Below, piece by piece: positions 1,838 to 15,258 of a stretch of 64,000 nt of DNA. The position numbers were made by a program, and so were the translations under genes. Within the stretch, counting starts at the first letter, position 1. Each line of letters begins with the position of its first letter. Below the pieces are notes generated by a model. It made no database searches. It saw nothing but the letters and a program-made list of their open reading frames with translations, and was not told the origin of the DNA. The DNA is from Bacillus subtilis subsp. subtilis str. 168 (GTDB lineage Bacteria; Bacillota; Bacilli; Bacillales; Bacillaceae), in the NCBI RefSeq assembly GCF_000009045.1, contig NC_000964.3:4092001-4156000 (forward strand). The letters run 5' to 3'.

Positions 1838-1979
1838 AAAAGACACCTCCAATCATTAGACAGATCTTAGATATATGTACGGTAACGTATAGATGGTTCA
1901 CCGTTGTCTTTCTTACAGAAAAGGTACCACCTTATAATAGGTCCGAGAAAAGAAGAAAGCAAATGAGGGGGATTTTACA

Positions 1980-3317
1980 ATGGAACAGCAAGTAAAGGAC
2001 GACATCCAGCGTGTCTTTCAGCTTCAGAAAAAACAGCAAAAAGCCTTGCGCGCTTCAACAGCGGAACAGCGGAGAGAAAAGCTTCAACGCTTTTTAGATT
2101 CCGTCATCGCCCATGAAGAAGAAATCATCGAAGCGATCCGCAAAGACGTCCGCAAACCATATCACGAAGTCAAAAAAGCGGAAATCGAAGGAACAAAAAA
2201 AGCGATTAGAGATAATATGAATAACCTGGAACAATGGATGGCGCCTAAAGAAGTCGGTTCATCGTTAAGCCCTGACGCAAACGGAATTCTTATGTACGAG
2301 CCTAAAGGCGTCACACTCATCCTCGGCCCGTGGAACTATCCGTTTATGCTGACGATGGCGCCGCTTGCCGCTTCTCTCGCAGCCGGAAACAGCGCGATTG
2401 TGAAGCTGTCCGATTTCACGATGAACACGAGCAACATTGCTGCTAAAGTAATAAGAGACGCTTTTGATGAAAAAGAAGTCGCGATTTTTGAAGGAGAGGT
2501 TGAGGTGGCAACCGAACTACTTGATCAGCCGTTCGACCATATTTTCTTCACTGGAAGCACAAATGTCGGGAAAATTGTCATGACAGCGGCTGCCAAACAC
2601 TTGGCATCTGTCACACTTGAGCTTGGCGGCAAGAGCCCGACGATCATTGACAGTGAATACGATCTGATGGACGCAGCGAAAAAGATCGCCGTCGGGAAAT
2701 TCGTAAACGCCGGCCAAACCTGCATCGCACCTGATTACCTGTTCATTAAAAAAGACGTTCAGGACAGGTTCGCGGGGATTTTACAAACAGTCGTCAACGC
2801 TGGATTTATGGAGGATGATCATACCCCAGACCGCAGCAAATTTACGCAGATCGTCAATGACCGCAACTTCAACCGCGTCAAAGATCTGTTCGACGATGCC
2901 ATCGAAAGAGGGGCGGAAGTGGTGTTCGGCGGCGTATTCGATGCCAGCGACCGCACGATCTCGCCAACCGTTTTGAAAAACGTCACGCCTGACATGAAAA
3001 TCATGCAGGAGGAAATCTTCGCATCGATCCTGCCAATGATGAACTATGAAGACATCGACGAGGTCATCGATTACGTAAATGACCGCGATAAACCGCTTGC
3101 ACTTTATGTGTTCAGCAAAAACCAAGATCTGATTGACAACGTCCTTCAGCACACGACATCAGGAAATGCCGCCATCAATGATGTCGTCGTCCATTTCAGT
3201 GACGTCAACCTGCCATTCGGCGGCGTCAACACAAGCGGAATCGGCTCCTATCATGGGGTATACGGATTCAAAGAGTTTTCTCATGAGAAGGGTGTATTTA
3301 TTCAGGCCGCTGAATAA
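1980..3317 (+). CDS. aldX: Aldehyde dehydrogenase
   Basis: PWNYP, FTGS, LELGGKSP, GQTCIAPDY, EEIF and PFGG motifs; GAGGGG SD. Confidence 0.93.
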   Translation: MEQQVKDDIQRVFQLQKKQQKALRASTAEQRREKLQRFLDSVIAHEEEIIEAIRKDVRKPYHEVKKAEIEGTKKAIRDNMNNLEQWMAPKEVGSSLSPDANGILMYEPKGVTLILGPWNYPFMLTMAPLAASLAAGNSAIVKLSDFTMNTSNIAAKVIRDAFDEKEVAIFEGEVEVATELLDQPFDHIFFTGSTNVGKIVMTAAAKHLASVTLELGGKSPTIIDSEYDLMDAAKKIAVGKFVNAGQTCIAPDYLFIKKDVQDRFAGILQTVVNAGFMEDDHTPDRSKFTQIVNDRNFNRVKDLFDDAIERGAEVVFGGVFDASDRTISPTVLKNVTPDMKIMQEEIFASILPMMNYEDIDEVIDYVNDRDKPLALYVFSKNQDLIDNVLQHTTSGNAAINDVVVHFSDVNLPFGGVNTSGIGSYHGVYGFKEFSHEKGVFIQAAE

Positions 3318-3327
3318 TCGCATGATC

Positions 3328-3357
3328 AAAAGGCGCTTCCTTAGAGGAGCGCCTTTT
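3328..3357. terminator. Bidirectional terminator aldX/yxbD
   Basis: AAAAGGCGCTTCC...GGAGCGCCTTTT inverted repeat. Confidence 0.8.
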
Positions 3358-3835
3358 ATTGTAACTCCTTGACCAAAAGCAATTCATCACGGATAGGTAT
3401 TTTATTATCTGCCAGTAAAGGAATTTCGGGCTTCATCTTTCTGGCCGTCTCGACTGCATTCACAAATAGTCGATCCAACCGGTACCCTCTCTTCTGATAA
3501 AACGCTAATGCATGAATATTATCATTGGTTGTGATCAGTTTTATTTGTTTGATATTTCTCTCTCTGCATGCTTCCTCGGCTTTCTCTAGCAGAGCTGTTC
3601 CGATCCCTTTATTCTCAATGACACTATCCAGCGAAATGATTTCACAGGCATCTTCTTCAAATATGTATGTAATAAGGCCAACAATCTGGTTATCATCGTT
3701 GAGCATTCCATAACCATCTAATTCATCGCAGTTATAAATACCGCTAGAAATAACCATTTGCGGACTGCCCCAGTGTTTTTGAAAAAACGCGGAAACAAGA
3801 TCTTTAGGTACCTGGCATGTCGGAATAATATTCAT
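3356..3835 (-). CDS. yxbD: GNAT-family N-acetyltransferase
   Basis: Acetyl-CoA motif (ENKGIGTALL) and NIHALAFYQKRGY; GGAGG SD. Confidence 0.88.
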   Translation of the reverse strand: MNIIPTCQVPKDLVSAFFQKHWGSPQMVISSGIYNCDELDGYGMLNDDNQIVGLITYIFEEDACEIISLDSVIENKGIGTALLEKAEEACRERNIKQIKLITTNDNIHALAFYQKRGYRLDRLFVNAVETARKMKPEIPLLADNKIPIRDELLLVKELQ

Positions 3836-3914
3836 ATTTTCCTCCTTTTAGCTGAACAAAAATAAGAGAATTAACAACCTATTTTATGTCATTAATCCCC
3901 TTATCTAGTATTTA

Positions 3915-4907
3915 CTAGAACTTATAACTTGTCAAAAGCTGTCTGAATACCAATTGCGTGGATTGATAAGGATCAAAATCTGAATCCTGAGATTGGAAGA
4001 TTTGCTCTGGGGTCAATGTCTCTGCGTTCTCTGATAACGTTTGAATCAGACTTTCCAAATATCCATTTAACTCTGATTTGGACGATTCATGTAGGGATTG
4101 ATGATTTACAGCGAGTTCTCTAAATCTGTTATCACTGATTAATTTTTTTCGAAGAGCTGCTAGCATCAAGTCAAGCCATGCAGGCTGGCCAAATGTAATA
4201 TTTAAAGCTAACGTTGCTTGATCAGATTTGGTGGAGTGCCATAAACCTCTTGGCAAATACAGCATGGTTCCCGGTGTTAAATTAACGATTTCTGCATCTG
4301 GCAGATCCTCTTTTGGCGGATCTCCTTTCCAATATGACTGTAAATCATCAGGATAGTAAGGAGCCTCTGATAAATCATAGTGCTGCATTGGATTGCTCAC
4401 ATTTTCATTCTTGGCAAGCTTCCATGTTTTCTCACCTTGAATTTGAAAAATCAAGTTGGTGTAGGCGTCAAAATGGGCTTTGAATCCCCCGCCATTTTTC
4501 GCCGCGTAAACAATGGCTTTGGAAGAAGTACCCGCAGGCAGTCTTAATTCCGCTTTGAGTTTTTCTATCCACCTTCTGACTTGGGGAATAAATAGGTCGG
4601 TGAAATCAAACTCTAATGCAGCCCCTTTTTCATACCACTCTAAAGCCTCTGCAGGTGACACAAGAAATCTGTCTGTGATCCCTTCAGATTCTTCAATCAC
4701 AGCATCACCAACGACCATGACTGGATTATTGTAGATAGCCAATACGTTTTCTAGCGTTCTAACCTTTTCAAACCCCGGTATGCTTGTAAATCTCTCCACT
4801 TCTCCTCTGGCTACCAAAGGTTTTACAGGCCAATATTCTTCTAAAAACTCACTCATCGTTACAGGACTGATGATAGACTCCAAAACCGATTCGGTTACAG
4901 CACTCAT
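3915..4907 (-). CDS. yxbC: JmjC/cupin 2-oxoglutarate-Fe(II) oxygenase
   Basis: HFD...WH facial triad (AHFDAYTN; PRGLWHST) and LTPGTMLYLPRG. ATG at 4907 follows a GGGAGG SD. Confidence 0.88.
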   Translation of the reverse strand: MSAVTESVLESIISPVTMSEFLEEYWPVKPLVARGEVERFTSIPGFEKVRTLENVLAIYNNPVMVVGDAVIEESEGITDRFLVSPAEALEWYEKGAALEFDFTDLFIPQVRRWIEKLKAELRLPAGTSSKAIVYAAKNGGGFKAHFDAYTNLIFQIQGEKTWKLAKNENVSNPMQHYDLSEAPYYPDDLQSYWKGDPPKEDLPDAEIVNLTPGTMLYLPRGLWHSTKSDQATLALNITFGQPAWLDLMLAALRKKLISDNRFRELAVNHQSLHESSKSELNGYLESLIQTLSENAETLTPEQIFQSQDSDFDPYQSTQLVFRQLLTSYKF

Positions 4908-4971
4908 ATTATCCCTCCCAAAAAAAGTAACTTCACCACAAAGATATAACATTTTTTTCTAAAAGTAAATA

Positions 4972-5000
4972 TTGACAGAATTATCAGAGGATTATAATAT
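4972..5000 (+). promoter_or_regulatory. SigA-type promoter for the peptide-yxbB-asnH transcript, overlapped by a CodY-like box
   Basis: TTGACA at 4972-4977. TATAAT at 4993-4998 (15-bp spacer) or TAATAT at 4995-5000 (17-bp spacer). AATTATCAGAGGATT at 4979-4993 matches the CodY consensus AATTTTCWGAAAATT at 12/15. Confidence 0.65.
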
Positions 5001-5048
5001 TTAGTTGTGCGTGATAGCCTATTTTTTTACAAGGAAGGAGGGAAAAGG

Positions 5049-5117
5049 ATGAAAAAGGCTTATAAGAAACCTCGTCTTTTTGAACTGCGCCGTGCTGTAG
5101 CAGCTGGCGGCCATTAA
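5049..5117 (+). CDS. 22-aa putative RiPP precursor, copy 1: MKKAYKKPRLFELRRAVAAGGH
   Basis: AAGGAGG SD, ATG...TAA, YxxPxL motif. Too short for the ORF track; translated by hand. Confidence 0.82.
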   Translation: MKKAYKKPRLFELRRAVAAGGH

Positions 5118-5166
5118 TCTCATATAGCATTTGACATCTAGTACTCTATTTTAGGAGGGATGCTCA

Positions 5167-5235
5167 ATGAAAAAAGCTTATAAGAAACCTCGCCTTTTTG
5201 AACTGCGCCGTGCTGTAGCAGCTGGCGGCCATTAA
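5167..5235 (+). CDS. 22-aa putative RiPP precursor, copy 2 (identical peptide)
   Basis: AGGAGG SD 8 nt upstream. Differs from copy 1 only at synonymous sites (AAG>AAA, CGT>CGC). Confidence 0.82.
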   Translation: MKKAYKKPRLFELRRAVAAGGH

Positions 5236-5284
5236 TCTCATATAGCATTTGACATCTAGTACTCTATTTTAGGAGGGATGCTCA

Positions 5285-5353
5285 ATGAAAAAAGCTTATA
5301 AGAAACCTCGCCTTTTTGAATTGCGCCGCGCTGTAGCAGCTGGCGGTCATTAA
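5285..5353 (+). CDS. 22-aa putative RiPP precursor, copy 3 (identical peptide)
   Basis: AGGAGG SD. Differs from copy 2 only at synonymous sites (CTG>TTG, CGT>CGC, GGC>GGT). Confidence 0.82.
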   Translation: MKKAYKKPRLFELRRAVAAGGH

Positions 5354-5415
5354 TCTTATCCAAAACGATTAACGTTTGAGGCTATCACGCCAACTTGATA
5401 AGGAGGATGCTGAAG

Positions 5416-6150
5416 ATGATTACGGCTGAAGAATGCAGAACGTACAAAGAATTTGTTGATCTTTACCAATCCTATCTTTACCCCTTGCTTGGCGCCAGAC
5501 TGTCCCGGATGTATTCCCCCAAAAACAAAGTCATTATCGATATGGGCACAGGTCCAGGTTATTTAAGCATTCAGTTGGCTAAAAGAACAAATGCGCACGT
5601 GCATGCTGTCGATATTAACCCGGCCATGCATGAAATCGCTCAAGAAGAAGCTAAAAAAAGCGGAGTAAGCAGCCTGATTTCATTTGATTTGGAAGATGTC
5701 CACCATTTATCTTACGCTGACCAATATGCTGACTTCATCGTCTCCTACTCTTGCCTGCATCATTGGGAAGACGTTGTTAAAGGACTTAAAGAGTGCTATA
5801 GAGTTCTGGCTCCGGGCGGAAAAATTGTCATTTTGGATACATTTAATCCCCAAGGAAGCCATTTAGAGATTATGCGAAAACAAATCAAAGAACCGGAATA
5901 CTTCAGGTTTGTAAGAGAGGCATTTGAAGAAAGTTATTCCTTTGAAGACATTCACCAGTTTGTTCAGGATGCCGGCATTCCCAATTATTCATTAGAAACC
6001 TTTCACTTTTTACCGGAGGATTTTATAGAAAGCTTAGATGAGCTGGAGGATGCTCCCCTGTGGGAACAAAATGATCAAAGTACTGATCATGAAATTGAGT
6101 CTGTCACATGGATGTTAACGATAGAAAAAGAAAAGGAAGGTGCATTGTAA
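5416..6150 (+). CDS. yxbB: Class I SAM-dependent methyltransferase
   Basis: Motif [37 protein letters not shown]; AGGAGG SD at 5401. Confidence 0.9.
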
Positions 6151-6419
6151 TGATCAATGAATCAACTGTTTTATCCAAAAATCCAGAAATGCCATCAAGA
6201 AAATATTTGAAAAGCATTATTATAGAGCCGGGCATCACTTTAAATGAAATGGCATCAGATATTTATAACCATATCGACGGCAAGGTCAGCATACATGATA
6301 TTTGCTCAAAAATCGTCAATGAATATGATGTTGATTATCAAACCTGCTTAGAAGATTGTATGGAGCTGTTTGAGTTGCTTATTGATCATGAAGCAATCAA
6401 AGTTAAGCAGGGGGCATGA
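6150..6419 (+). CDS. yxbA: PqqD-family / RiPP recognition element (RRE) protein
   Basis: 89 aa with the PqqD-type pattern [31 protein letters not shown]...[12 protein letters not shown]; start overlaps the yxbB stop (TAATG). Confidence 0.82.
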
Positions 6420-6422
6420 GAA

Positions 6423-6905
6423 TTGGAAAAACAAAAAGTGCTTGCTTTACCAGACGATGTACATGAGCTGAGTACACACCGTTCTAAATCAATCGTAAAT
6501 TACATCATCACTCTGCTTGCCTTTGCCAAAAAACAAGGATTGACTCATCAAGATATTGTAAGCTGGATTCACGAGCAATATGAGGAAAGAGGATATTATG
6601 ATGAGTGGAGACACATTAACAGCCAACAACCAGTTGGATCATTTGTGGAACTCTTTATAAAAGGAAGACGTTTACTTTATGACAAAATTGAATTGTTTGA
6701 AACAGAAGATAAATATGTCGTAAATACCCACACTTGGTATGAAAAAGAACCTAGTGAGGCCTTTTTTTATTTTGAAATTGATCCCGAAGAATTTTCTGCG
6801 TACGCTTCCATTCTCGCAATCGAAAACGCAAAACGTCTCGGAATTAAAATCGATATTGTAAAAGAAACAGATGTAGAGACAGCTTATATCTATAAACATC
6901 AATAA
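6423..6905 (+). CDS. yxnB: Uncharacterised 160-aa protein
   Basis: TTG-start ORF in the operon between yxbA and asnH; no motif recognised. Confidence 0.8.
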   Translation: MEKQKVLALPDDVHELSTHRSKSIVNYIITLLAFAKKQGLTHQDIVSWIHEQYEERGYYDEWRHINSQQPVGSFVELFIKGRRLLYDKIELFETEDKYVVNTHTWYEKEPSEAFFYFEIDPEEFSAYASILAIENAKRLGIKIDIVKETDVETAYIYKHQ

Positions 6906-6925
6906 CGCTATTGGGAGGGAGACAT

Positions 6926-9169
6926 ATGTGCGGGCTCGCGGGTATTATAAATCTGGCTGCTCCCCGTTCTCAGGAATGTACCTTTCATATATTGAAAGGC
7001 ATGGCAGATGCCATCAGCTATAGGGGACCGGATGATGAACAATATCATATTGATTCCAAAGTCGGCTTTGCATTTCGGCGATTGTCCATTCTTGACCTTG
7101 TAAATGGACAGCAGCCCTTTTTAAATGAGGATGGATCAATCGTCGTTATGGTAAATGGAGAAATTTATAACTATAAAGAACTGAAGGCTTCTTTACACAA
7201 TCATATGTTTAAAACGACATCTGATTGTGAAGTAATTGTTCATTTATATGAAGAAAAAGGGATTGGATTTGTAGACGACATCATCGGAATGTTTTCAATA
7301 GCCATTTGGGACAAAAATAAAAACAAAGTATTTTTAGTTCGTGACCGCTTTGGGATTAAACCGCTTTTTTACACAGAGCTAAAACACGAGCTTATATTTG
7401 CCTCTGAAATAAAATCCCTATTTTCTCATCCTCACTGTCCCCGCCAATTTAATTGGAAAGAAGCACTCTCAGACATTTGGCTAAGCGGGGAAGCAGCCAG
7501 TAATCATAAAGAAACCACTTCCTTTTTTGTAAACATCCAAAATCTCGATGCTGGCCATTATCTCGAAATTAATTTGACAACAAATGAACGAAAAACAGCA
7601 AGCTATTGGTCTTTACAGGATATTTTGCTCAGGCAAGGCTATCGTGAGAATCTCCATCCCGATGACCTGATTGAAGGATATAGAGAACTGCTGGCAGATT
7701 CAGTCCATAGATGTTTACAAAGCGACGTTGAAGTCGGGTTGTTTCTTAGCGGTGGCATTGATTCAGCTGCAGTCGCACATTTTGCTGCAGAAAAACAGGA
7801 TCTCCATACGTTTACAGTATTAAGCCAAAGTACATTTACAAATGAAGATGCAAAATATGCCCATTGGCTGGCTAAAGATTTACACCTTCCAAATCATCAG
7901 GTTCTCTATCAATTAGGGAACGATGAGTTATTACAACCAGAGTCATATAAACATTTGTTATGGATCTGTGAAACACCGTTTTGCGGACCGGAACAATTAT
8001 ATAAGTTTCATTTACATAAGTATGCCAAAGCGATAAGGCCAAACCTGAAAGTCATGCTGACCGGCCAGGGCAGCGACGAATTTAACGGCGGTTACAGCAC
8101 GACACTTTCACCAGCCGAGAACCCAAGTTGGGAAGGATTTATTGAATCGGTCAATACGATGGAGATGAACCGGCTGCATCGGCTGCAGGGAAATATCTTT
8201 AGAGTGTGGGAGGAGCATTTTGGACTTTCTCCTATAAACCTTTCTTATTTAAAGAGCAATGATTCCAGCCAAGCAGATCCTTGGCAATCGTATGTCCTGA
8301 CAAAATACCGTGATCTGCAAATGTATAATTGCTGGCATGAAGATCGGATCGCCGCGGCTAATCATATCGAAAACCGTGTACCGTTCTTGGACCATCGGCT
8401 TGTTGAATGGGTTTGCGGAATACCTGATGGACTCCGTAAAGACTTGTTATGGGATAAGTCGGTATTGCGAAAATCATTAACAAATGAGCTGCATACAAGC
8501 TATACCCACCGGCCAAAGGTTCCTTTTTTCTATGGTAAGGACGTGAGATATACACATAAAATGATGTTTCATCTTCTGAAGAAAAACAATTATCAGCTTA
8601 TAGAGGAGGCCTTCTCTCACAGCGATGCCTCCAGCATAATACAGGTTGAACACATTCATGCCATCATGACATATTTGGAGGATGATCCTGAGTTTACAAA
8701 TTTTGAATTTTTATTAAGACTGGTGAACATGGGACTTTTATCAAAAATGACTAAAGAAACCCCTTCTGTTCAATTAGACATAACCAGCCATTTAGAATCG
8801 ATAACAATAAAAGACTGGCACTCACAGGAAGGTGATATTGCCAGTCGTTTAAATATCTCAGCCAATAAGTGTGAAGGACAAGATATTTTGGCGCTAAACC
8901 CTGGCGTCACTCTGTTAAGGCCGGAAAGCGATAGTGAGCATTGCATCTACATTGCGGAAGAAGGATTTATTCAGTTTATTGTTTCGGAGGAAGACGTCGG
9001 AGCTTGGCTGCATATTCTCTGCGATATTAATGGAAAAGACACACTTCATACGATTTTAGACAGACATGGTGTCAGCCTTGAAGAAGTGGCCAAATATATT
9101 CAAGAAGCCATCGAACACAATATCATTTTGATCAAACAAAAAAATCTGCCAGAAGGAGCATATAGATGA
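6926..9169 (+). CDS. asnH: Glutamine-hydrolysing asparagine synthetase-like amidotransferase with C-terminal extension
   Basis: N-terminal MCGLAG (Ntn Cys), RGPDD, PP-loop LSGGIDS, TGQGSDE; GGGAGG SD. Confidence 0.93.
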   Translation: MCGLAGIINLAAPRSQECTFHILKGMADAISYRGPDDEQYHIDSKVGFAFRRLSILDLVNGQQPFLNEDGSIVVMVNGEIYNYKELKASLHNHMFKTTSDCEVIVHLYEEKGIGFVDDIIGMFSIAIWDKNKNKVFLVRDRFGIKPLFYTELKHELIFASEIKSLFSHPHCPRQFNWKEALSDIWLSGEAASNHKETTSFFVNIQNLDAGHYLEINLTTNERKTASYWSLQDILLRQGYRENLHPDDLIEGYRELLADSVHRCLQSDVEVGLFLSGGIDSAAVAHFAAEKQDLHTFTVLSQSTFTNEDAKYAHWLAKDLHLPNHQVLYQLGNDELLQPESYKHLLWICETPFCGPEQLYKFHLHKYAKAIRPNLKVMLTGQGSDEFNGGYSTTLSPAENPSWEGFIESVNTMEMNRLHRLQGNIFRVWEEHFGLSPINLSYLKSNDSSQADPWQSYVLTKYRDLQMYNCWHEDRIAAANHIENRVPFLDHRLVEWVCGIPDGLRKDLLWDKSVLRKSLTNELHTSYTHRPKVPFFYGKDVRYTHKMMFHLLKKNNYQLIEEAFSHSDASSIIQVEHIHAIMTYLEDDPEFTNFEFLLRLVNMGLLSKMTKETPSVQLDITSHLESITIKDWHSQEGDIASRLNISANKCEGQDILALNPGVTLLRPESDSEHCIYIAEEGFIQFIVSEEDVGAWLHILCDINGKDTLHTILDRHGVSLEEVAKYIQEAIEHNIILIKQKNLPEGAYR

Positions 9170-10365
9170 GCATCTTTTATTCGTTTTCCGCACTTAGGGG
9201 ATTAGCAATGGGGATTTTTTCGCCTATTTGGATTCTTTATCTGATATCTAAAGATTATGATTTCCTTCAGATTGGATTAATGGGAGCGGTACTTGAAATT
9301 GCTAAGCTTATATTTGAAGTTCCTTCCGGCGTTTTTGCTGATCGTTATGGAATTAAAATTTCAATTGCCAGTTCATTCTTTTTCTCCATCCTTACATGGG
9401 CCTTCTTCCCTTTTATCGATTCAGCTGCTATTTGCATACTGGCTATGATCATATGGGCTTTATCAGATTCCTTAATTTCCGGTTCTTTTGAAACTTGGAT
9501 GAGCCGTGTCGCAGGGGAAGATCGATTCGGCAAAGAAATGATGAAAAACACACAATTGCTAATCACTTTTTTAATTATTGGAAGTATTGCCAGCGGGTAT
9601 TTGTATTCATTAAATATCTATTTTCCTTTCCTGCTCGTTATGGTGATCTACTTATTACTATTTATTTGGATGTCTGTATTTATTAAAGTCCCTTCTGTTT
9701 CCGAAACAAATCATGGGGATCAGAACCAACATGATTCGATAAAGATTATCAAAGAAAGTTTAAAAATTATCTTTAACAAAAAAAGGGTTCTTTTAATCGT
9801 CATAGCCGGTTTCTTTACAGCCACAGCCTATGACACAATTTCCCGTTACTGGCAGCCTTTTTTGAGTGATTTAGGCTTTTCAGAAAAGTCACTGGGATAT
9901 ATTTTTGCCCTAGGAGGGTTTACCGCTCTCGTTCTTTTGACATTAACCATCAGGTTCGAAAAGAAGATCGAAAAAAATCCATATCTCGCTTTAACCTCAT
10001 TGGATTCCATGGGCATGGTCATGACTTTTCTATTGTCTAGAGCATTCAGGCCGCTGGGCATTCCATGTACAGCGTTTTTGCTTGCAATTGAAGATATTCA
10101 TCATCCGATCGTAACAAGTTACTTAAATAAGTTTTTCCCCGATTCATACAAGAACACACTTTTCTCGTTAAACTCAGGGGTAGGAGCAATTGGAGAAATT
10201 CTTTCCGGTGTCATTTTCGGCATCATTTCCGCAGCCTTTGGGCTCTCTGCCATGTTTGTTGTTGTAGCTGTATTTCTATTAATCCCTATTATCCTTTATA
10301 CGATAGTGCCTAAGATTAAAGACAATGATATGAAAGTTCAGATTGAAAAATCCCAGCAAGTGTAA
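9166..10365 (+). CDS. yxaM: MFS efflux transporter
   Basis: Many hydrophobic segments; MFS motif A-like GVFADRYGIK; overlaps the asnH stop (ATGA). Confidence 0.88.
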   Translation: MSIFYSFSALRGLAMGIFSPIWILYLISKDYDFLQIGLMGAVLEIAKLIFEVPSGVFADRYGIKISIASSFFFSILTWAFFPFIDSAAICILAMIIWALSDSLISGSFETWMSRVAGEDRFGKEMMKNTQLLITFLIIGSIASGYLYSLNIYFPFLLVMVIYLLLFIWMSVFIKVPSVSETNHGDQNQHDSIKIIKESLKIIFNKKRVLLIVIAGFFTATAYDTISRYWQPFLSDLGFSEKSLGYIFALGGFTALVLLTLTIRFEKKIEKNPYLALTSLDSMGMVMTFLLSRAFRPLGIPCTAFLLAIEDIHHPIVTSYLNKFFPDSYKNTLFSLNSGVGAIGEILSGVIFGIISAAFGLSAMFVVVAVFLLIPIILYTIVPKIKDNDMKVQIEKSQQV

Positions 10366-10383: not shown

Positions 10384-10414
10384 AGAAGACCTTCTTATTA
10401 AAAGAAGGTCTTCT
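10384..10414. terminator. Bidirectional terminator yxaM/yxaL
   Basis: Perfect 13-bp stem AGAAGACCTTCTT/AAGAAGGTCTTCT. Confidence 0.8.
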
Positions 10415-11761: not shown

Positions 11762-12187
11762 CTATGTAAGAGTATTCACGGACGTTTTTTCAGCACCCGA
11801 TCGAAATGCAGCCACAAACCAAATGACGTTGACAGCAGCCGCAGCGAGACTAACTCCCAAAACAAAGATCACCTCAGAAAGCAGATGGTCACTAAAGAAA
11901 CTAAACATCAAGATAAAACCGGCCGAAGACAAATGAATCAAAAGCCCGAAGCCGCAAAGCACCGCCATGACATACCTCATTGCATCGACTCCGAGCATAT
12001 AAACGAGAAATGGAATGAAATACAAGACAAGGATCATACCGACAGCTGACCACATGCCAGCTGAATTAAACTGATTGGCCGCCGCTCCCGTTCCGGCCAG
12101 CGGCGAAAGTGAAGCCGCCACAATCACGGCGCAAAAAAGAAACGCAGAAATGGTTGTCATGATCGCCACGCTATTTTTTTTTGACAT
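11762..12187 (-). CDS. yxaJ: Integral membrane protein, four predicted TM segments
   Basis: Hydrophobic ORF with AAGGAGGAG SD. Confidence 0.82.
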   Translation of the reverse strand: MSKKNSVAIMTTISAFLFCAVIVAASLSPLAGTGAAANQFNSAGMWSAVGMILVLYFIPFLVYMLGVDAMRYVMAVLCGFGLLIHLSSAGFILMFSFFSDHLLSEVIFVLGVSLAAAAVNVIWFVAAFRSGAEKTSVNTLT

Positions 12188-12443
12188 CAAACTCCTCCTT
12201 TAATAGAAATATTAACCTTTTTTATTATAAGTAAGTTGAATGTTATATTCATTATATTTTTAAAAAATTCCAGAATACATACACAAATGCTATGCTTCTT
12301 TCTAGTATATTTATATAGTAAAAAACAAAGGATAAAAGACTCATTTTTCTGTAATATCAGGATTTTATCACCATACCATATTGCATGTACATGTTTTTCA
12401 AAGTATACTATTCCAGATTAATTCAGAGGAGAGAGAAAAATAC

Positions 12444-12899
12444 ATGGAAAAACCAGCAGGATTTTGGATTCGTTTTTTAGCTTATTTTATTGACGGCATT
12501 ATTGTATCTGTTCCTAGTTATATTATTCTATTTATTATCAATTCTGTGTTTGTAGCTGGGGCTGTGGCAACAAACCCTTACATGACGGAAGAAGAGTATT
12601 TAGTGAAATACATGACGCTTGCATTTTTGCCTACTATGCTGATCATGATCGTCATCAGCGTGTTATATTACGGGCTGCTCACAGCTTCTAAAATGCAAGG
12701 CACACTTGGCAAAAAAATTCTTGGCCTGAAAGTGGTCAATGAACAAGGTGAACGGGTTTCTGTCGGACAGGGAATTGGCCGTTACTTTGCCTATATCTTA
12801 TCTGGAATCATCTTTTATATCGGGTTTATCATGATCGCCTTTGGAGAGAAAAAAGGCCTGCATGACATCATTTGCAAAACACGTGTCGTGTATAAATAA
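12444..12899 (+). CDS. yxaI: RDD-family membrane protein
   Basis: AGFWIRFLAYFIDG, GTLGKKILGLKVV, GLHDIICKTRVV. Confidence 0.88.
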   Translation: MEKPAGFWIRFLAYFIDGIIVSVPSYIILFIINSVFVAGAVATNPYMTEEEYLVKYMTLAFLPTMLIMIVISVLYYGLLTASKMQGTLGKKILGLKVVNEQGERVSVGQGIGRYFAYILSGIIFYIGFIMIAFGEKKGLHDIICKTRVVYK

Positions 12900-12928
12900 T
12901 AGAAAAAAGTCTAGACGCCAATAGGCAT

Positions 12929-14137
12929 CTAGACTTTTGTTTTCTTTGCAATAGGCTGCCACGACAGATACGTAGCGCTTCTCCACAACCACTCAAACGG
13001 CCCCATCCGAAAGACACGAAGCCAAAGGTGGCTGAAGACCATTTGAACGGCACAAACAGCAATTGTAATGAGCACACCGGCAGCAGGGTACACTTTTCCA
13101 TACAGGCCCAAGCCGTAATGATAAAAAATCCAAGTACACACAATAGACTGCATCAAATAATTGGTAAATGCCATCCTCCCAACAGCGGAGAATGATTGCA
13201 GCACTGTTCTCACTCTTGTTTTATGATAAAGATAGACAACCGTTGTAACATAGAAAAACATGAGGAAAGGCGCGCCAATCAGCAAACATATTTCTTTATC
13301 CGTTACACTGTACAGCACCTGGGCGCCGATGCCGATGACAAGCCCAGCCATCCATAATCGTTTTAATCCTTTGCGATGCTTTTCCGGTTCATGCAAATAC
13401 CGTGATTTTGCTGCCGCAGCTCCCAGCAAAAACATGCTGAAATATGGAATGGATGCAAAGAAGTAGTTGAGCGGATTATACGTAAGCATGCCATTCGAAG
13501 ACATGTAAACAAGACGGTCGTGGATCCGCTGTTCTGCAATATCCTTCAGGCTGCCGCTTCCATAAACATGAATCGCTTGTTTTGCCTGCTGTGTTACCGC
13601 TTGTACCCATTCCTGTCCGTTTGATTGATCAAAACTTGTCAACATGAACGGAATGGAAAACAGAAGATACAAAGAGACCGCCCATATCAGCAGTGTTTTC
13701 GGCTTTGCTTTTCGAAACAAGAGCAGGACAAATCCGAGCAGGGCATATTCTGTTAAAATATCCCCGTCCCATATCAAAAAGGCATGAATCGTTCCAAACA
13801 AGAGAAGCGCCATTAACCTTCTCACATATAACGGAACAAACCGTTTCCCTTTGTTTTCTGCTCTCTCCATCATGACAACCATGCCAAATCCAAATAAAAA
13901 GGAAAACAATAAAATACATTTTGTTTGAATGAAGAATTTCAGTATGTCTGCGGCGGCAAAATCAGCTTCAGACCACTTATCCATGAAAAAATTCTCTTTT
14001 CCAAGCATAGACAAATACATATCCGGATAACTGAAATGTGCCAGATTGACAAATAAGATGCCGAAAATCGCCATTCCTCTCAGCACATCAAGCACACCGA
14101 TCCGCTCATTTGTTAAAGTCGGCTGTAATGAAGACAT
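12929..14137 (-). CDS. yxaH: DUF418-like polytopic membrane protein
   Basis: RIGVLDVLRGMAIFGIL, GRMAFTNYLMQS, GPFEWLWR. Confidence 0.85.
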   Translation of the reverse strand: MSSLQPTLTNERIGVLDVLRGMAIFGILFVNLAHFSYPDMYLSMLGKENFFMDKWSEADFAAADILKFFIQTKCILLFSFLFGFGMVVMMERAENKGKRFVPLYVRRLMALLLFGTIHAFLIWDGDILTEYALLGFVLLLFRKAKPKTLLIWAVSLYLLFSIPFMLTSFDQSNGQEWVQAVTQQAKQAIHVYGSGSLKDIAEQRIHDRLVYMSSNGMLTYNPLNYFFASIPYFSMFLLGAAAAKSRYLHEPEKHRKGLKRLWMAGLVIGIGAQVLYSVTDKEICLLIGAPFLMFFYVTTVVYLYHKTRVRTVLQSFSAVGRMAFTNYLMQSIVCTWIFYHYGLGLYGKVYPAAGVLITIAVCAVQMVFSHLWLRVFRMGPFEWLWRSATYLSWQPIAKKTKV

Positions 14138-14244
14138 AGCCATCACGCTCCTTTTTTCTGTACCTTAAGGGTAGGAAAAAATGAAGCGCGGTAACATCGA
14201 TTTAGGTGTCAGGCCGGCATGAAAACCTTACAATCTTGTCATCT

Positions 14245-15258
14245 TTATGGTTTCATCACCTTTAAATCTAATGCTTCGATATTCTGCAAAATGCGATCAA
14301 AGCGCAAAGCCTGAGGCTCACATGGGAAGATGTGGCCTTCATACGGGTCGCCTAACGTCCGGAAAAACGGTTCAAATAAACCAGGAACCAATACGCCCAC
14401 CATCTTTGTATAGTGAGAATCAAGGCGATAGGAGTGAACGGTATTTGCAGGGACATGCAGGAAATCTCCCGGATTCAGCTGAATTTCCTGGCCATCTGTC
14501 CACATCGTCATCTGGCCTTCAAGGCAATAAAATGTTTCTGTATGATATTCATGGTAGTGATCAACGATTCGGTCACCTTTAGGGCCTTCAGATGATACGA
14601 CGATAAACTGGCCATCTGTATTTTTTTGTGCAGCCACAATGCGGTGAAGCTGATCTCCAGTCAACAGACGATCTCCTTCTCCAGATTCAAGAACGTATGG
14701 AACCGCTCCATCTGGCAGCTCTGTAAGTTCCGCTAATTTGGCCGAACATGCAGGCTTTGCTTCATCTAGAAATACAATGTCCGCTACAGCGGCTGCTTCT
14801 GCAAATCGCTCGTTTGAGACTTCTTCGCTTGCGTACGGCGGATGTTCAGCGTGATCATACGGATTCCCAATAACGGAATACAAGTGCGCTACGTTTCCTT
14901 TCATCGTGTAAGACACCAGTCTTGTTCTGTGGCTCTGCATCCGGTAGCTGTGCGGTGTTCCCGCCGGAATGTTGGCATAATCACCTGATATTAATAAATA
15001 GCGTTCACCATCAAGTGTCAGTTCCAGTTTCCCGTCCAAAACGAGAATTCCTTCATGTGTGTCCTTGTGGACGTGAAGCGGAAAGGCATCTCCTTTTCCC
15101 CCGGAAAGAAGCACGATCTCAAACAAATCACCTGTGCTCCTCCCATTCGCCATCACCGTGGCAACCTGTCTGCCGAACAGATAGCGCTCGCCTTCTCCGC
15201 TCCGGAGCAAATAAGGCATTTTTTCTTTAGGCAATGAATGTGTACATAATGTTTTCAT
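14245..15258 (-). CDS. qdoI: Quercetin 2,3-dioxygenase (bicupin)
   Basis: Two cupin motifs, HVHKDTHE and HYHEYHTE. Confidence 0.92.
   Translation of the reverse strand: MKTLCTHSLPKEKMPYLLRSGEGERYLFGRQVATVMANGRSTGDLFEIVLLSGGKGDAFPLHVHKDTHEGILVLDGKLELTLDGERYLLISGDYANIPAGTPHSYRMQSHRTRLVSYTMKGNVAHLYSVIGNPYDHAEHPPYASEEVSNERFAEAAAVADIVFLDEAKPACSAKLAELTELPDGAVPYVLESGEGDRLLTGDQLHRIVAAQKNTDGQFIVVSSEGPKGDRIVDHYHEYHTETFYCLEGQMTMWTDGQEIQLNPGDFLHVPANTVHSYRLDSHYTKMVGVLVPGLFEPFFRTLGDPYEGHIFPCEPQALRFDRILQNIEALDLKVMKP

Follow-up and report, generated by a model that had tools for sequence, protein, structure and literature searches.

A candidate RiPP-type gene cluster with conserved 22-residue peptides in the asnH region of Bacillus subtilis 168

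Asparagine-synthetase-like (AS-like) enzymes that modify the C-terminus of RiPPs (peptides synthesized on ribosomes and modified after translation) are the closest described counterparts of the system treated here, the asnH region of Bacillus subtilis subsp. subtilis str. 168. The region lies in a 64,000-nucleotide stretch of the chromosome (contig NC_000964.3, positions 4,092,001 to 4,156,000), which is called the window in the following and to which all positions refer unless another locus is named. The AS-like enzyme FzmA carries a RiPP recognition element (RRE) fused to its C-terminus and modifies the C-terminal carboxylate of FzmZ, a 22-mer peptide with a YxxP motif (PMC13622209, preprint September 2026). 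It works together with a discrete RRE (FzmT), an S-adenosylmethionine (SAM)-dependent methyltransferase (FzmH), and a protein of the major facilitator superfamily (MFS), and the leader is cut by general peptidases; enzymes of this type co-occur with discrete PqqD RREs (79%), with MFS proteins (54%), and with "21/22-mer" YxxP peptides that are missed by automated tools (PMC13622209). PesC from the nitrilobacillin pathway, TsrC from the thiostrepton pathway, and ScdTA adenylate the C-terminal carboxylate of a RiPP and add a glutamine-derived nitrogen, for which a neighboring hydroxylation is a prerequisite in the pes pathway (PMC13060819). About 300 uncharacterized RiPP-associated AS-like enzymes have been counted (PMC13060819), and the AsnH family may be among them; B. 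subtilis AsnH itself is mentioned neither in the FzmA preprint (PMC13622209) nor in the nitrilobacillin preprint (PMC13060819). The comparison presented here suggests, with a probability of roughly 0.8, that the block 3356-10365 around asnH is a biosynthetic gene cluster of the RiPP type and belongs to a class not described before.

The gene order at the locus is aldX-yxbD-yxbC / yxbB-yxbA-yxnB-asnH-yxaM / yxaL. A sequence-only reading of the same DNA had pointed out three 22-codon open reading frames (ORFs), each preceded by a Shine-Dalgarno sequence, at the 5' end of the operon, and had named the products of the seven larger genes; the small ORFs are present as described, and the assignments of YxbB, YxbA, YxnB, AsnH, YxaM, YxbC, and YxbD were confirmed by Pfam and NCBIfam (Table 1). 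The claim that the block is richer in A+T than its surroundings also holds, as its G+C content is 36-43% compared to 45-52% in the flanks.

The small ORFs are contained in three 118-bp units, which are arranged in tandem head-to-tail at 5049-5402 (354 bp) and which are 100, 98, and 67% identical to the first unit. Each unit contains a GGAGG motif followed by an ATG-initiated ORF of 22 codons, and in 3/3 units the translation is MKKAYKKPRLFELRRAVAAGGH. This exact 22-residue sequence exists without a name in NCBI and UniRef, and no NCBIfam model covers it. Because three identical ORFs within a DNA repeat are not independent of each other, evidence for a coding function had to come from other genomes. 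The metagenomic contig L001 contains three copies of MKKAYKKPRLFELRRAVVAGGH, a peptide ending in AVVAGGH and otherwise as in B. subtilis. Between L001 and the window, each ORF has 11-15 nucleotide differences, with 9-13 synonymous changes and 1 non-synonymous change, and the peptides are 95% identical while the flanking enzymes are 55-68% identical. At the nucleotide level the ORFs are 82% identical, and the spacers between them, Shine-Dalgarno sequences apart, are 61% identical compared to 54 +/- 5% for shuffled sequences. Pairwise ratios of non-synonymous to synonymous differences per site (pN/pS) among six Bacillota taxa are 0.03-0.48 with pS values of 0.46-0.99, i.e., with synonymous sites near saturation. 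As judged from these comparisons, the small ORFs are protein-coding genes under strong purifying selection.

Across all loci, 12 distinct peptide sequences of 21-23 residues were found. All of them start with MKK, contain YxxP[R/K], end with GGH directly before the stop codon, and have a distance of 17 residues from tyrosine to histidine. The sequence-only reading had described the motif as YxxPxL; its first part stands as YxxP[R/K] across species, and the rest of it is not conserved. The peptide is MKKEYKKPRAFELRRAVIAGGH in Anoxybacillus, MKKVYKAPRIVEIERAAVVGGH in Alicyclobacillus, MKKVYKKPRALELRRMTIDGGH in Paenibacillus, MKKYVAPRVVEVRQATVLGGH in Streptomyces, and MKKYVAPRVVEVRRATVAGGH at locus L013, and Bacillus xiamenensis encodes MKKVYKTPRLVEIRNVVVAGGH plus copies with the exchanges K6R, T7N, and E12D. 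An acidic residue at position 12 (Glu or Asp) is kept in 11/12 variants. It is absent from the peptide of the distant locus L017, MKKITYKKPKLIKLSSVTQLGGH; this peptide lacks Asp and Glu altogether, although an AS-like enzyme is encoded next to it. A scan of JGI metagenomes with a degenerate DNA pattern of the peptide gave 0 matches.

The conserved gene set became visible via YxnB. Among 5.8 billion proteins, a word-indexed search with YxnB found, besides B. subtilis, one relative with 56% identity, which is encoded on contig L001; there, a divergent JmjC gene is followed by three 22-codon ORFs and genes for a methyltransferase, a PqqD protein, and YxnB. Since word-indexed searches found too few relatives, a full HMMER scan with the two YxnB sequences was run against 1.84 billion representative proteins, and this made the family visible with 50 representatives. 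A genome scan with the two-sequence alignment found nothing, not even the B. subtilis locus, which was presumably masked. With a 12-sequence alignment, five genomic loci were found in Anoxybacillus mongoliensis, Alicyclobacillus suci, Bacillus xiamenensis, Bacillus sp. 28A-2, and Paenibacillus wenxiniae. At these loci the peptide ORF is present in 1, 2, or 5 copies, each with a Shine-Dalgarno sequence, and the same enzymes adjoin. Three further family members come from Streptomyces sp. SL13 and from two metagenomic lineages, where one operon encodes, in this order, the peptide, the methyltransferase, PqqD, a YxnB::GNAT fusion, an MFS protein, an AS-like enzyme of 732-734 residues with an MCG or MCA start, and the JmjC protein.

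Thus, the short ORFs that the sequence-only reading had proposed to look for beside homologs of AsnH, YxbA, YxbB, and YxbC are found: in two phyla, and at no fewer than eight independent loci, a peptide ORF stands next to homologs of YxbC, YxbB, YxbA, YxnB, YxbD, AsnH, and the MFS protein. The JmjC gene is part of every complete cluster, a YxbB homolog adjoins the peptide ORFs at all loci, and complete clusters contain an MFS gene, of two different MFS types. Gene order and orientation vary, with a divergent arm of JmjC-MFS-GNAT in Paenibacillus and all genes co-directional in Streptomyces, and the peptide copy number ranges from 1 to 5. The membership of yxbD, about which the earlier reading had been uncertain, follows from a Rosetta-stone link, because YxnB is fused to a C-terminal YxbD-like GNAT domain in Alicyclobacillus, B. 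xiamenensis, Streptomyces, and others, and the fusion is seen in about 10 family representatives. On this comparative basis, the seven protein genes are one system, and the comparison identifies the three 22-codon ORFs as precursor or scaffold peptide genes. Several gene copies are plausible for such a peptide because each molecule would be consumed.

The peptide array is also bracketed by a long-range RNA stem (Table 1). In the window, the 5' arm corresponds to the predicted first nucleotides of the mRNA, and the stem length was reached by 0/2000 shuffles. With the window included, a bracket of this kind with unrelated arm sequences is present at 7/8 Bacillota loci around arrays of 1, 2, 3, or 5 ORFs. 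The arms are located at 3304-3316/3667-3679 in L001, 8654-8668/8927-8941 in L003, 1499-1511/1638-1650 in L004, 8401-8414/8993-9006 in L005, 8861-8874/8993-9006 in L006, and 237-253/381-397 in L017. At five loci the perfect run is 12-17 nt, which none of 2000 shuffles reached, and the two imperfect stems differ by G-U pairs only. Because the arms are unrelated in sequence and the mismatches are confined to G-U, the stem covaries. The Paenibacillus and actinobacterial loci have a local hairpin after the ORF instead of the bracket. The overall folding energy of the B. subtilis leader is unremarkable (z = -1.37); only the long-range stem is significant, and a search of 4900-5450 against Rfam gave no family.

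This stem bears on an explanation in which the triplication is an RNA element only, which stabilizes asnH mRNA, while the small ORFs are incidental or serve ribosome loading. An RNA-stabilizing role has been assigned to the "long sequence triplication" of asnH (5049-5402) by Morinaga et al. 2010 (Microbiology 156:1632), and, as far as can be seen from the title of that study and from papers citing it, a coding capacity or a link to peptide modification was not proposed. The conserved long-range stem and the strong Shine-Dalgarno sequences are in line with such a role. However, it is the amino-acid sequence rather than the RNA sequence that is kept, as the low pN/pS values, the nearly saturated synonymous sites, and the diverged spacers indicate. 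From Bacillus to Streptomyces, the MKK start, YxxP[R/K], and GGH are retained, as is the fixed length, and since the copies range from 1 to 5, conservation does not extend to the triplication as such. A function as RNA does not conflict with a coding function, and it is only the exclusive version that is contradicted; this version is very unlikely. Duplexes at the 5' end and strong ribosome-binding sites are known to stabilize mRNAs in B. subtilis. The long-range 5' stem together with the strong ribosome-binding sites therefore probably explains the published effect of the triplication. The bracket is probably a clamp that stabilizes or excises the precursor cassette. To our knowledge, no such RNA clamp has been described for RiPP precursor genes.

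The AS-like enzyme of the proposed cluster is AsnH. Its sequence has an N-terminal cysteine nucleophile (Cys2, within MCG) and an SGGIDS PP-loop motif. Cys2 is kept in 7/7 full-length AsnH orthologs, within MCG in Bacillota and within MCG or MCA in actinobacterial proteins. Among solved structures, AsnH is closest to the hydroxyamidotransferase 7YLZ, with AsnB from E. coli ranking behind it. AsnH is not limited to the architecture of the housekeeping asparagine synthetase B, as it has an extra C-terminal domain of about 110-160 residues that is kept from Bacillus to Streptomyces, and as its gene belongs to an island encoding peptides, an RRE, and JmjC, GNAT, and MFS proteins. AlphaFold2 predicts strands followed by three helices for this extension; the predicted local distance difference test (pLDDT) values are 74-85 there, and the mean is 61. 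Almost all of the best Foldseek matches of the extension in the PDB are RRE-bearing RiPP enzymes, namely TruD, the RRE of PbtF, ThcOx, MccB, TbtB, and MadB (weak, with E values of 0.04-2). When the extension was compared with the YxbA family by hhalign, the probability was 67% (E 5e-5), and a helix region with "DG..T" was aligned. A word-indexed search with the C-terminal 163 residues of AsnH retrieved only the protein itself. Taken together, an RRE-like nature of the extension is moderately supported by the fold model and the profile-profile comparison, on which this assignment rests because searches of Pfam and PDB profiles gave noise. By these features, AsnH looks like a peptide-directed amidotransferase.

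A discrete RRE is encoded by yxbA, whose product the sequence-only reading had called PqqD-like. This is supported by the PqqD match (Table 1) and by a profile of nine YxbA orthologs, which matches the PqqD structure 3G2B and the lasso B1 proteins 9X90_B, TbiB1, and TfuB1; the best NCBIfam match of YxbA is a lasso PqqD chaperone, below its cut-off. YxbC is identical to the PDB entries 1VRB and 7ZCC, and the next solved sequences are those of the histidyl hydroxylases MINA53 and NO66. The iron-binding motif HxD...H is present (AHFD, WHST) and conserved in orthologs, and the protein has been placed in the MINA/NO66/YcfD clade by Iyer et al. 2010 (PMC2938197).

YxnB is rare, being matched by only 50 representative clusters among the 1.84 billion proteins. 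In its AlphaFold2 model (pLDDT 88, predicted TM-score 0.83), four helices pack against a sheet of four strands. Foldseek returned de novo designs as well as H-NOX and Bet3 at TM-scores <0.5, and no natural relative in the PDB at a TM-score >=0.5. Near-invariant positions are W48, G57, G81, R82, G140, and E152, none of which is obviously catalytic. Because of this lack of obvious catalytic residues and because of the fusion with GNAT domains, an adaptor or substrate-binding role can be considered; the sequence features suggest that YxnB is an adaptor for the GNAT protein or a substrate-binding domain.

These assignments can be combined into a model of the pathway. The N-terminal part MKK-x-Y-x-x-P-R..E-L would be the leader, and its YxxP segment would be bound by YxbA and by the RRE-like domain of AsnH. 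That YxxP segments serve as RRE-binding leaders has been established with RREs of the lasso and related types (PMC13381572; PMC13622209). Residues 14-19, which are variable in sequence and invariant in length, would be a spacer, and the fixed spacing of 17 residues would place the C-terminal Gly-Gly-His into the active sites. As GGH is invariant and has a fixed distance to YxxP, the chemistry is expected at the C-terminus and not along the whole peptide. AsnH would adenylate the C-terminal carboxylate of His22 and transfer nitrogen from its glutaminase domain, with a C-terminal carboxamide as the most likely product and a nitrile or another N-substituent as further possibilities. By analogy to the characterized enzymes, it is most likely that AsnH amidates or otherwise N-functionalizes the C-terminal histidine. 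YxbC would hydroxylate a side chain, for which His22 and Arg9 are the candidates because its closest characterized relatives hydroxylate His and Arg. YxbB would add a methyl group, and YxnB together with YxbD would add an acetyl group or, as self-protection, inactivate the product. Export would be the task of the MFS pump YxaM. Since the cluster encodes no protease and has an MFS-type exporter, the exported product is probably a small C-terminal fragment freed by housekeeping peptidases, and less probably the whole modified 22-mer. The small C-terminal product, which is probable by analogy to fosfazinomycin, is the weakest step of the model.

From this model a more specific reading can be derived, which is tentative and is held at somewhat below even odds. 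According to this reading, the 22-mer is a disposable scaffold, a small exported histidine-derived metabolite is built on Gly-Gly-His, and the precursor mRNA is held by the RNA clamp. The metabolite would be a hydroxylated, methylated, and/or acetylated (Gly-Gly-)His-amide, perhaps a metal-binding compound resembling amino-terminal Cu(II)- and Ni(II)-binding (ATCUN) motifs or an antimetabolite. The covarying long-range 5'-3' clamp would maintain the precursor cassette as an mRNA with a stabilization of its own.

Regarding the reaction of AsnH, a RiPP cluster in which the enzyme forms a lasso-like or tail-to-side-chain macrolactam as a cyclase, or in which it acts on a side chain and forms an amide at Glu/Asp12, has to be weighed. 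Lasso cyclases, too, are of the AS-like type and work with RREs of the PqqD type and with YxxP leaders (PMC13381572). In addition, the acidic residue at position 12 is nearly always kept, the peptide has several Lys amines, and the AS-like enzyme of L017 has no N-terminal Cys, as cyclases. On the other hand, every ortholog of the main family keeps the glutaminase Cys, and AsnH fails the lasso-cyclase model NF033535 with 190 bits at a cut-off of 525. A B2 leader peptidase (transglutaminase-like), which would have to free the N-terminus, is encoded neither in the window block nor by the genes of the related loci. The C-terminus is favored over Glu12 because it is the only invariant carboxylate, as the L017 peptide without Asp and Glu shows, because a change from Glu to Gln could simply be encoded by the gene, and because the characterized AS-like RiPP enzymes that are not cyclases (TsrC, ScdTA, PesC, and FzmA) act there (PMC13060819; PMC13622209). 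A cyclase or side-chain enzyme is therefore considered unlikely. L017 is a distant variant cluster (peptide at 291-362, AS-like gene at 1846-3666), and its enzyme, which starts with MPLTITKD.., may catalyze a cyclization or use free ammonia. The RRE motif in L017 is RPYLK in place of RKYLK elsewhere, possibly as a co-change with E12K in the peptide.

A lasso peptide in the strict sense was rejected. In lasso cyclases the glutaminase Cys is lacking, and it is kept in AsnH. The locus shares with lasso clusters the PqqD-type RRE, for which TbiB1 and TfuB1 are among the nearest solved relatives, the YxxP leader motif, and an enzyme of the AS family, but AsnH fails the cyclase model, the B2 protease is missing, and the peptide is too short. 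No Asp or Glu is placed for a lasso ring of 7-9 residues, as the sole acidic residue, residue 12 of 22, belongs to the conserved leader-like part, so that no ring is possible. The non-lasso RiPP-type cluster with 22-residue precursors and an AsnH acting on a peptide that the sequence-only reading had proposed is thus supported by the conserved gene set, by selection, by the predicted RRE-like domain of AsnH, and by the failed lasso tests.

Several results weigh against this reading. AsnH passes the asparagine-synthase equivalog model TIGR01536 with 361 bits at a cut-off of 267. Plasmid-borne asnH is said to have complemented an asparagine auxotroph of E. coli in the hands of Yoshida and co-workers in 1999. 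In view of this complementation AsnH probably also uses free aspartate, an activity that would have been retained. The scores behind the RRE assignment of the AsnH extension are weak (Foldseek E >=0.04, mean pLDDT 61, hhalign 67%); Pfam searches with E values up to 10 returned noise such as DnaD_N and NPR2, and the PDB profile search with the extension also returned noise. No leader protease is encoded at any locus examined. The Anoxybacillus cluster has no GNAT gene, so that acetylation is not essential everywhere. The cluster family is rare and is decaying in the B. pumilus group. Finally, every chemical step of the model is inferred from the genes, and this includes the methyl, hydroxyl, acetyl, and amide modifications that had been suggested from the window sequence before.

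The match of AsnH to the asparagine-synthase model is also the starting point for another explanation, in which the ORFs encode leader peptides with a regulatory role (upstream ORFs for attenuation or ribosome arrest), by which a metabolic operon is tuned, and AsnH is an ordinary asparagine synthetase. The ORFs are located in the 5' leader of the operon, and arrest peptides can be conserved in sequence. The operon is controlled by CodY (PMC6200986); control by both CodY and AbrB is found in the literature (PMC6200986; Morinaga 2010 as referred to in a citing paper). However, up to five tandem identical copies are not a feature of an attenuator, and neither a terminator nor an antiterminator separates the ORFs from yxbB. 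The operon carries an RRE, a peptide-type hydroxylase, an exporter, and, except in Anoxybacillus, a GNAT gene, and it is found on mobile islands and not in a context of amino-acid metabolism. The extra RRE-like domain on AsnH also argues against an ordinary synthetase. Taken together, a purely regulatory function of the peptides is very unlikely. An asparagine-sensing attenuator in particular was rejected, as the 22-residue peptide has no Asn codon and thus cannot sense the supply of asparagine.

As judged from its composition and surroundings, the cluster behaves as an accessory island, being A+T-rich in B. subtilis and associated with insertion scars elsewhere. In the B. pumilus group a stepwise deletion can be followed at one chromosomal site (L005, L006, and L010). 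The full cluster, with five peptide copies, is present in B. xiamenensis. In Bacillus sp. 28A-2, most of the JmjC gene, the MFS and AS-like genes, and four peptide copies are gone, and in a metagenomic relative the methyltransferase gene and most of the PqqD gene are missing, too.

Further observations concern the surroundings of individual loci. In Anoxybacillus mongoliensis (L003), an IS66-type transposase gene adjoins the JmjC gene at the place expected for the GNAT gene, and two copies of an acyl-CoA thioesterase fragment flank the cluster (features 5160-5516, 5606-6861, and 14046-14597). In Paenibacillus wenxiniae (L007), the cluster is on an island inside a comM/yifB-like Mg-chelatase gene, the 3' end of which is duplicated on the opposite side (2834-4927 vs 13492-13887), and an ORF containing a helix-turn-helix motif is located at the edge of the island (12767-13825).

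The features of the block are compiled in Table 1. The starts of four genes were shifted according to ortholog alignments, to 4907 for YxbC (M16 of the ORF), 5416 for YxbB, 6150 for YxbA, and 6926 for AsnH (MCG), and the longest-ORF starts of 3915-4952, 5395-6150, 6108-6419, and 6911-9169 are probably wrong. The YxbA start overlaps the yxbB stop as TAATG. Of the two terminators that had been proposed as boundaries, the right one was found by a terminator scan. The hairpin at the left boundary is visible and was not listed by the scan, which misses it because the stem is bulged. A second sharp dip in G+C content (0.33-0.34) is located at 12000-12750, past yxaL and a small ORF for a membrane protein.

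Table 1. Features of the asnH block and of its boundaries, with positions in the window.
Feature	Position	Strand	Remarks
Hairpin between aldX and yxbD, bidirectional	3328..3357	.	Left boundary; read from sequence, AAAAGGCGCTTCC...GGAGCGCCTTTT
yxbD, GNAT acetyltransferase, RimI/Nat type	3356..3835	-	Pfam Acetyltransf_1, E 1e-14; best NCBIfam match rimI
yxbC, JmjC/ROX-type Fe(II)/2-oxoglutarate hydroxylase	3915..4907	-	Pfam JmjC_2 PF08007, E 1e-15
Sigma-A-type promoter of the peptide/asnH operon	4972..4999	+	TTGACA 4972-4977, TATAAT 4994-4999; near-consensus
5' arm of the long-range RNA stem	5004..5020	+	12 nt (5009-5020) perfectly complementary to 5379-5390; one bulge extension in the minimum-free-energy fold
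Putative precursor/scaffold peptide ORF 1	5049..5117	+	MKKAYKKPRLFELRRAVAAGGH; Shine-Dalgarno AAGGAGGG upstream
Putative precursor/scaffold peptide ORF 2	5167..5235	+	Peptide same as ORF 1; pN/pS vs orthologs 0.03-0.41
Putative precursor/scaffold peptide ORF 3	5285..5353	+	Peptide same as ORF 1; 3 synonymous changes relative to ORF 2
3' arm of the long-range RNA stem	5379..5396	+	Downstream of peptide ORF 3; immediately upstream of the ribosome-binding site of yxbB
yxbB, class-I SAM-dependent methyltransferase	5416..6150	+	Pfam Methyltransf_11/25, E 1e-23 to 1e-25
yxbA, discrete PqqD-type RRE	6150..6419	+	Pfam PqqD PF05402, E 1e-10
yxnB, orphan alpha/beta domain	6423..6905	+	No Pfam or NCBIfam family
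asnH, glutamine-dependent asparagine-synthetase-like enzyme, predicted C-terminal RRE-like domain ~650-740	6926..9169	+	GATase_7 + Asn_synthase (Pfam); about 160 additional residues at the C-terminus
yxaM, MFS exporter	9166..10365	+	Pfam MFS_1, E 7e-26
Terminator hairpin	10384..10414	.	Right boundary; 13-bp stem, terminator scan

The genes yxbD, yxbC, yxbB, yxbA, yxnB, and asnH as well as yxaM have no assigned pathway in the Gram-positive reference organism B. subtilis 168. If the cluster reading is true, asnH, a gene of "primary metabolism", would have to be renamed. The crystallized orphan JmjC enzyme (1VRB/7ZCC) and the orphan fold of YxnB would obtain a function, and a new branch of AS-like enzymes acting on the C-terminus of scaffold peptides of 21/22 residues would be added. 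If the scaffold reading is also true, a new class of scaffold-peptide natural products would come from the best-studied Gram-positive laboratory strain, and the native role of AsnH would not be that of an asparagine synthetase. The RNA clamp would provide a concrete mechanism for a long-known problem, namely how precursor mRNA is kept in excess over enzyme mRNA. Most workers on B. subtilis would find this surprising, and it can be tested directly. The earlier statement that no product is described is consistent with the literature searched, in which two preprints from 2026 cover closely analogous AS-like systems; in the literature outside subscription journals, nothing was found that prints the peptide or links the asnH/yxb genes to RiPPs or peptide modification.

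Compared to known systems, the YxbC protein resembles MINA53, NO66, and YcfD, the His and Arg hydroxylases of ribosomal proteins, in its clade, in the HxD...H motif, and with respect to the invariant His and Arg/Lys of the peptide. It differs from them in that its substrate would be a neighbor-encoded 22-residue peptide and in that it is without known activity despite the structures 1VRB and 7ZCC. Pyrroloquinoline quinone (PqqA with PqqD), mycofactocin, pearlins, and pantocin A are all produced with a peptide of about 20-30 residues on a PqqD-fold chaperone. In the biosynthesis of such scaffold-peptide small molecules, chemistry takes place on few invariant residues, release is catalyzed by non-dedicated peptidases, and pantocin A and microcin C are exported by MFS proteins. 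In contrast to pyrroloquinoline quinone, mycofactocin, pearlin, and pantocin A systems, the asnH cluster has no radical-SAM, LanB-like, or ThiF-like enzyme. The LPP family of Popov et al. 2026 was considered and rejected as a different system, which has a SipW-like peptidase, an HprK kinase, and precursors of 35-200 residues (PMC13381572).

The pes cluster differs from the asnH cluster by its MNIO and HExxH oxygenases, its M16 peptidases, and a longer precursor ending in R(V/T)DN, and it has no JmjC, GNAT, or YxnB protein. The closest known system is that of fosfazinomycin. The likeness is one of architecture and comprises a YxxP precursor so short that it escaped notice for years, an AS-like enzyme of the glutamine-amidotransferase type with a C-terminal RRE (predicted in the case of AsnH), a discrete RRE, a methyltransferase, an MFS protein, and the lack of a dedicated protease. 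The fzm cluster differs by a nucleotidyl transferase, kinases, AurF-like oxygenases, genes for phosphonate and hydrazine formation, and a peptide ending in Val-Arg, whereas the asnH family is without hydrazine and phosphonate genes and has the JmjC hydroxylase, YxnB with the GNAT protein, and a Gly-Gly-His end. The cluster would thus be a variant of a just-emerging type, in which an AS-like enzyme and RREs act on a 21/22-mer scaffold peptide, and its novelty is tempered by the precedents from 2026.

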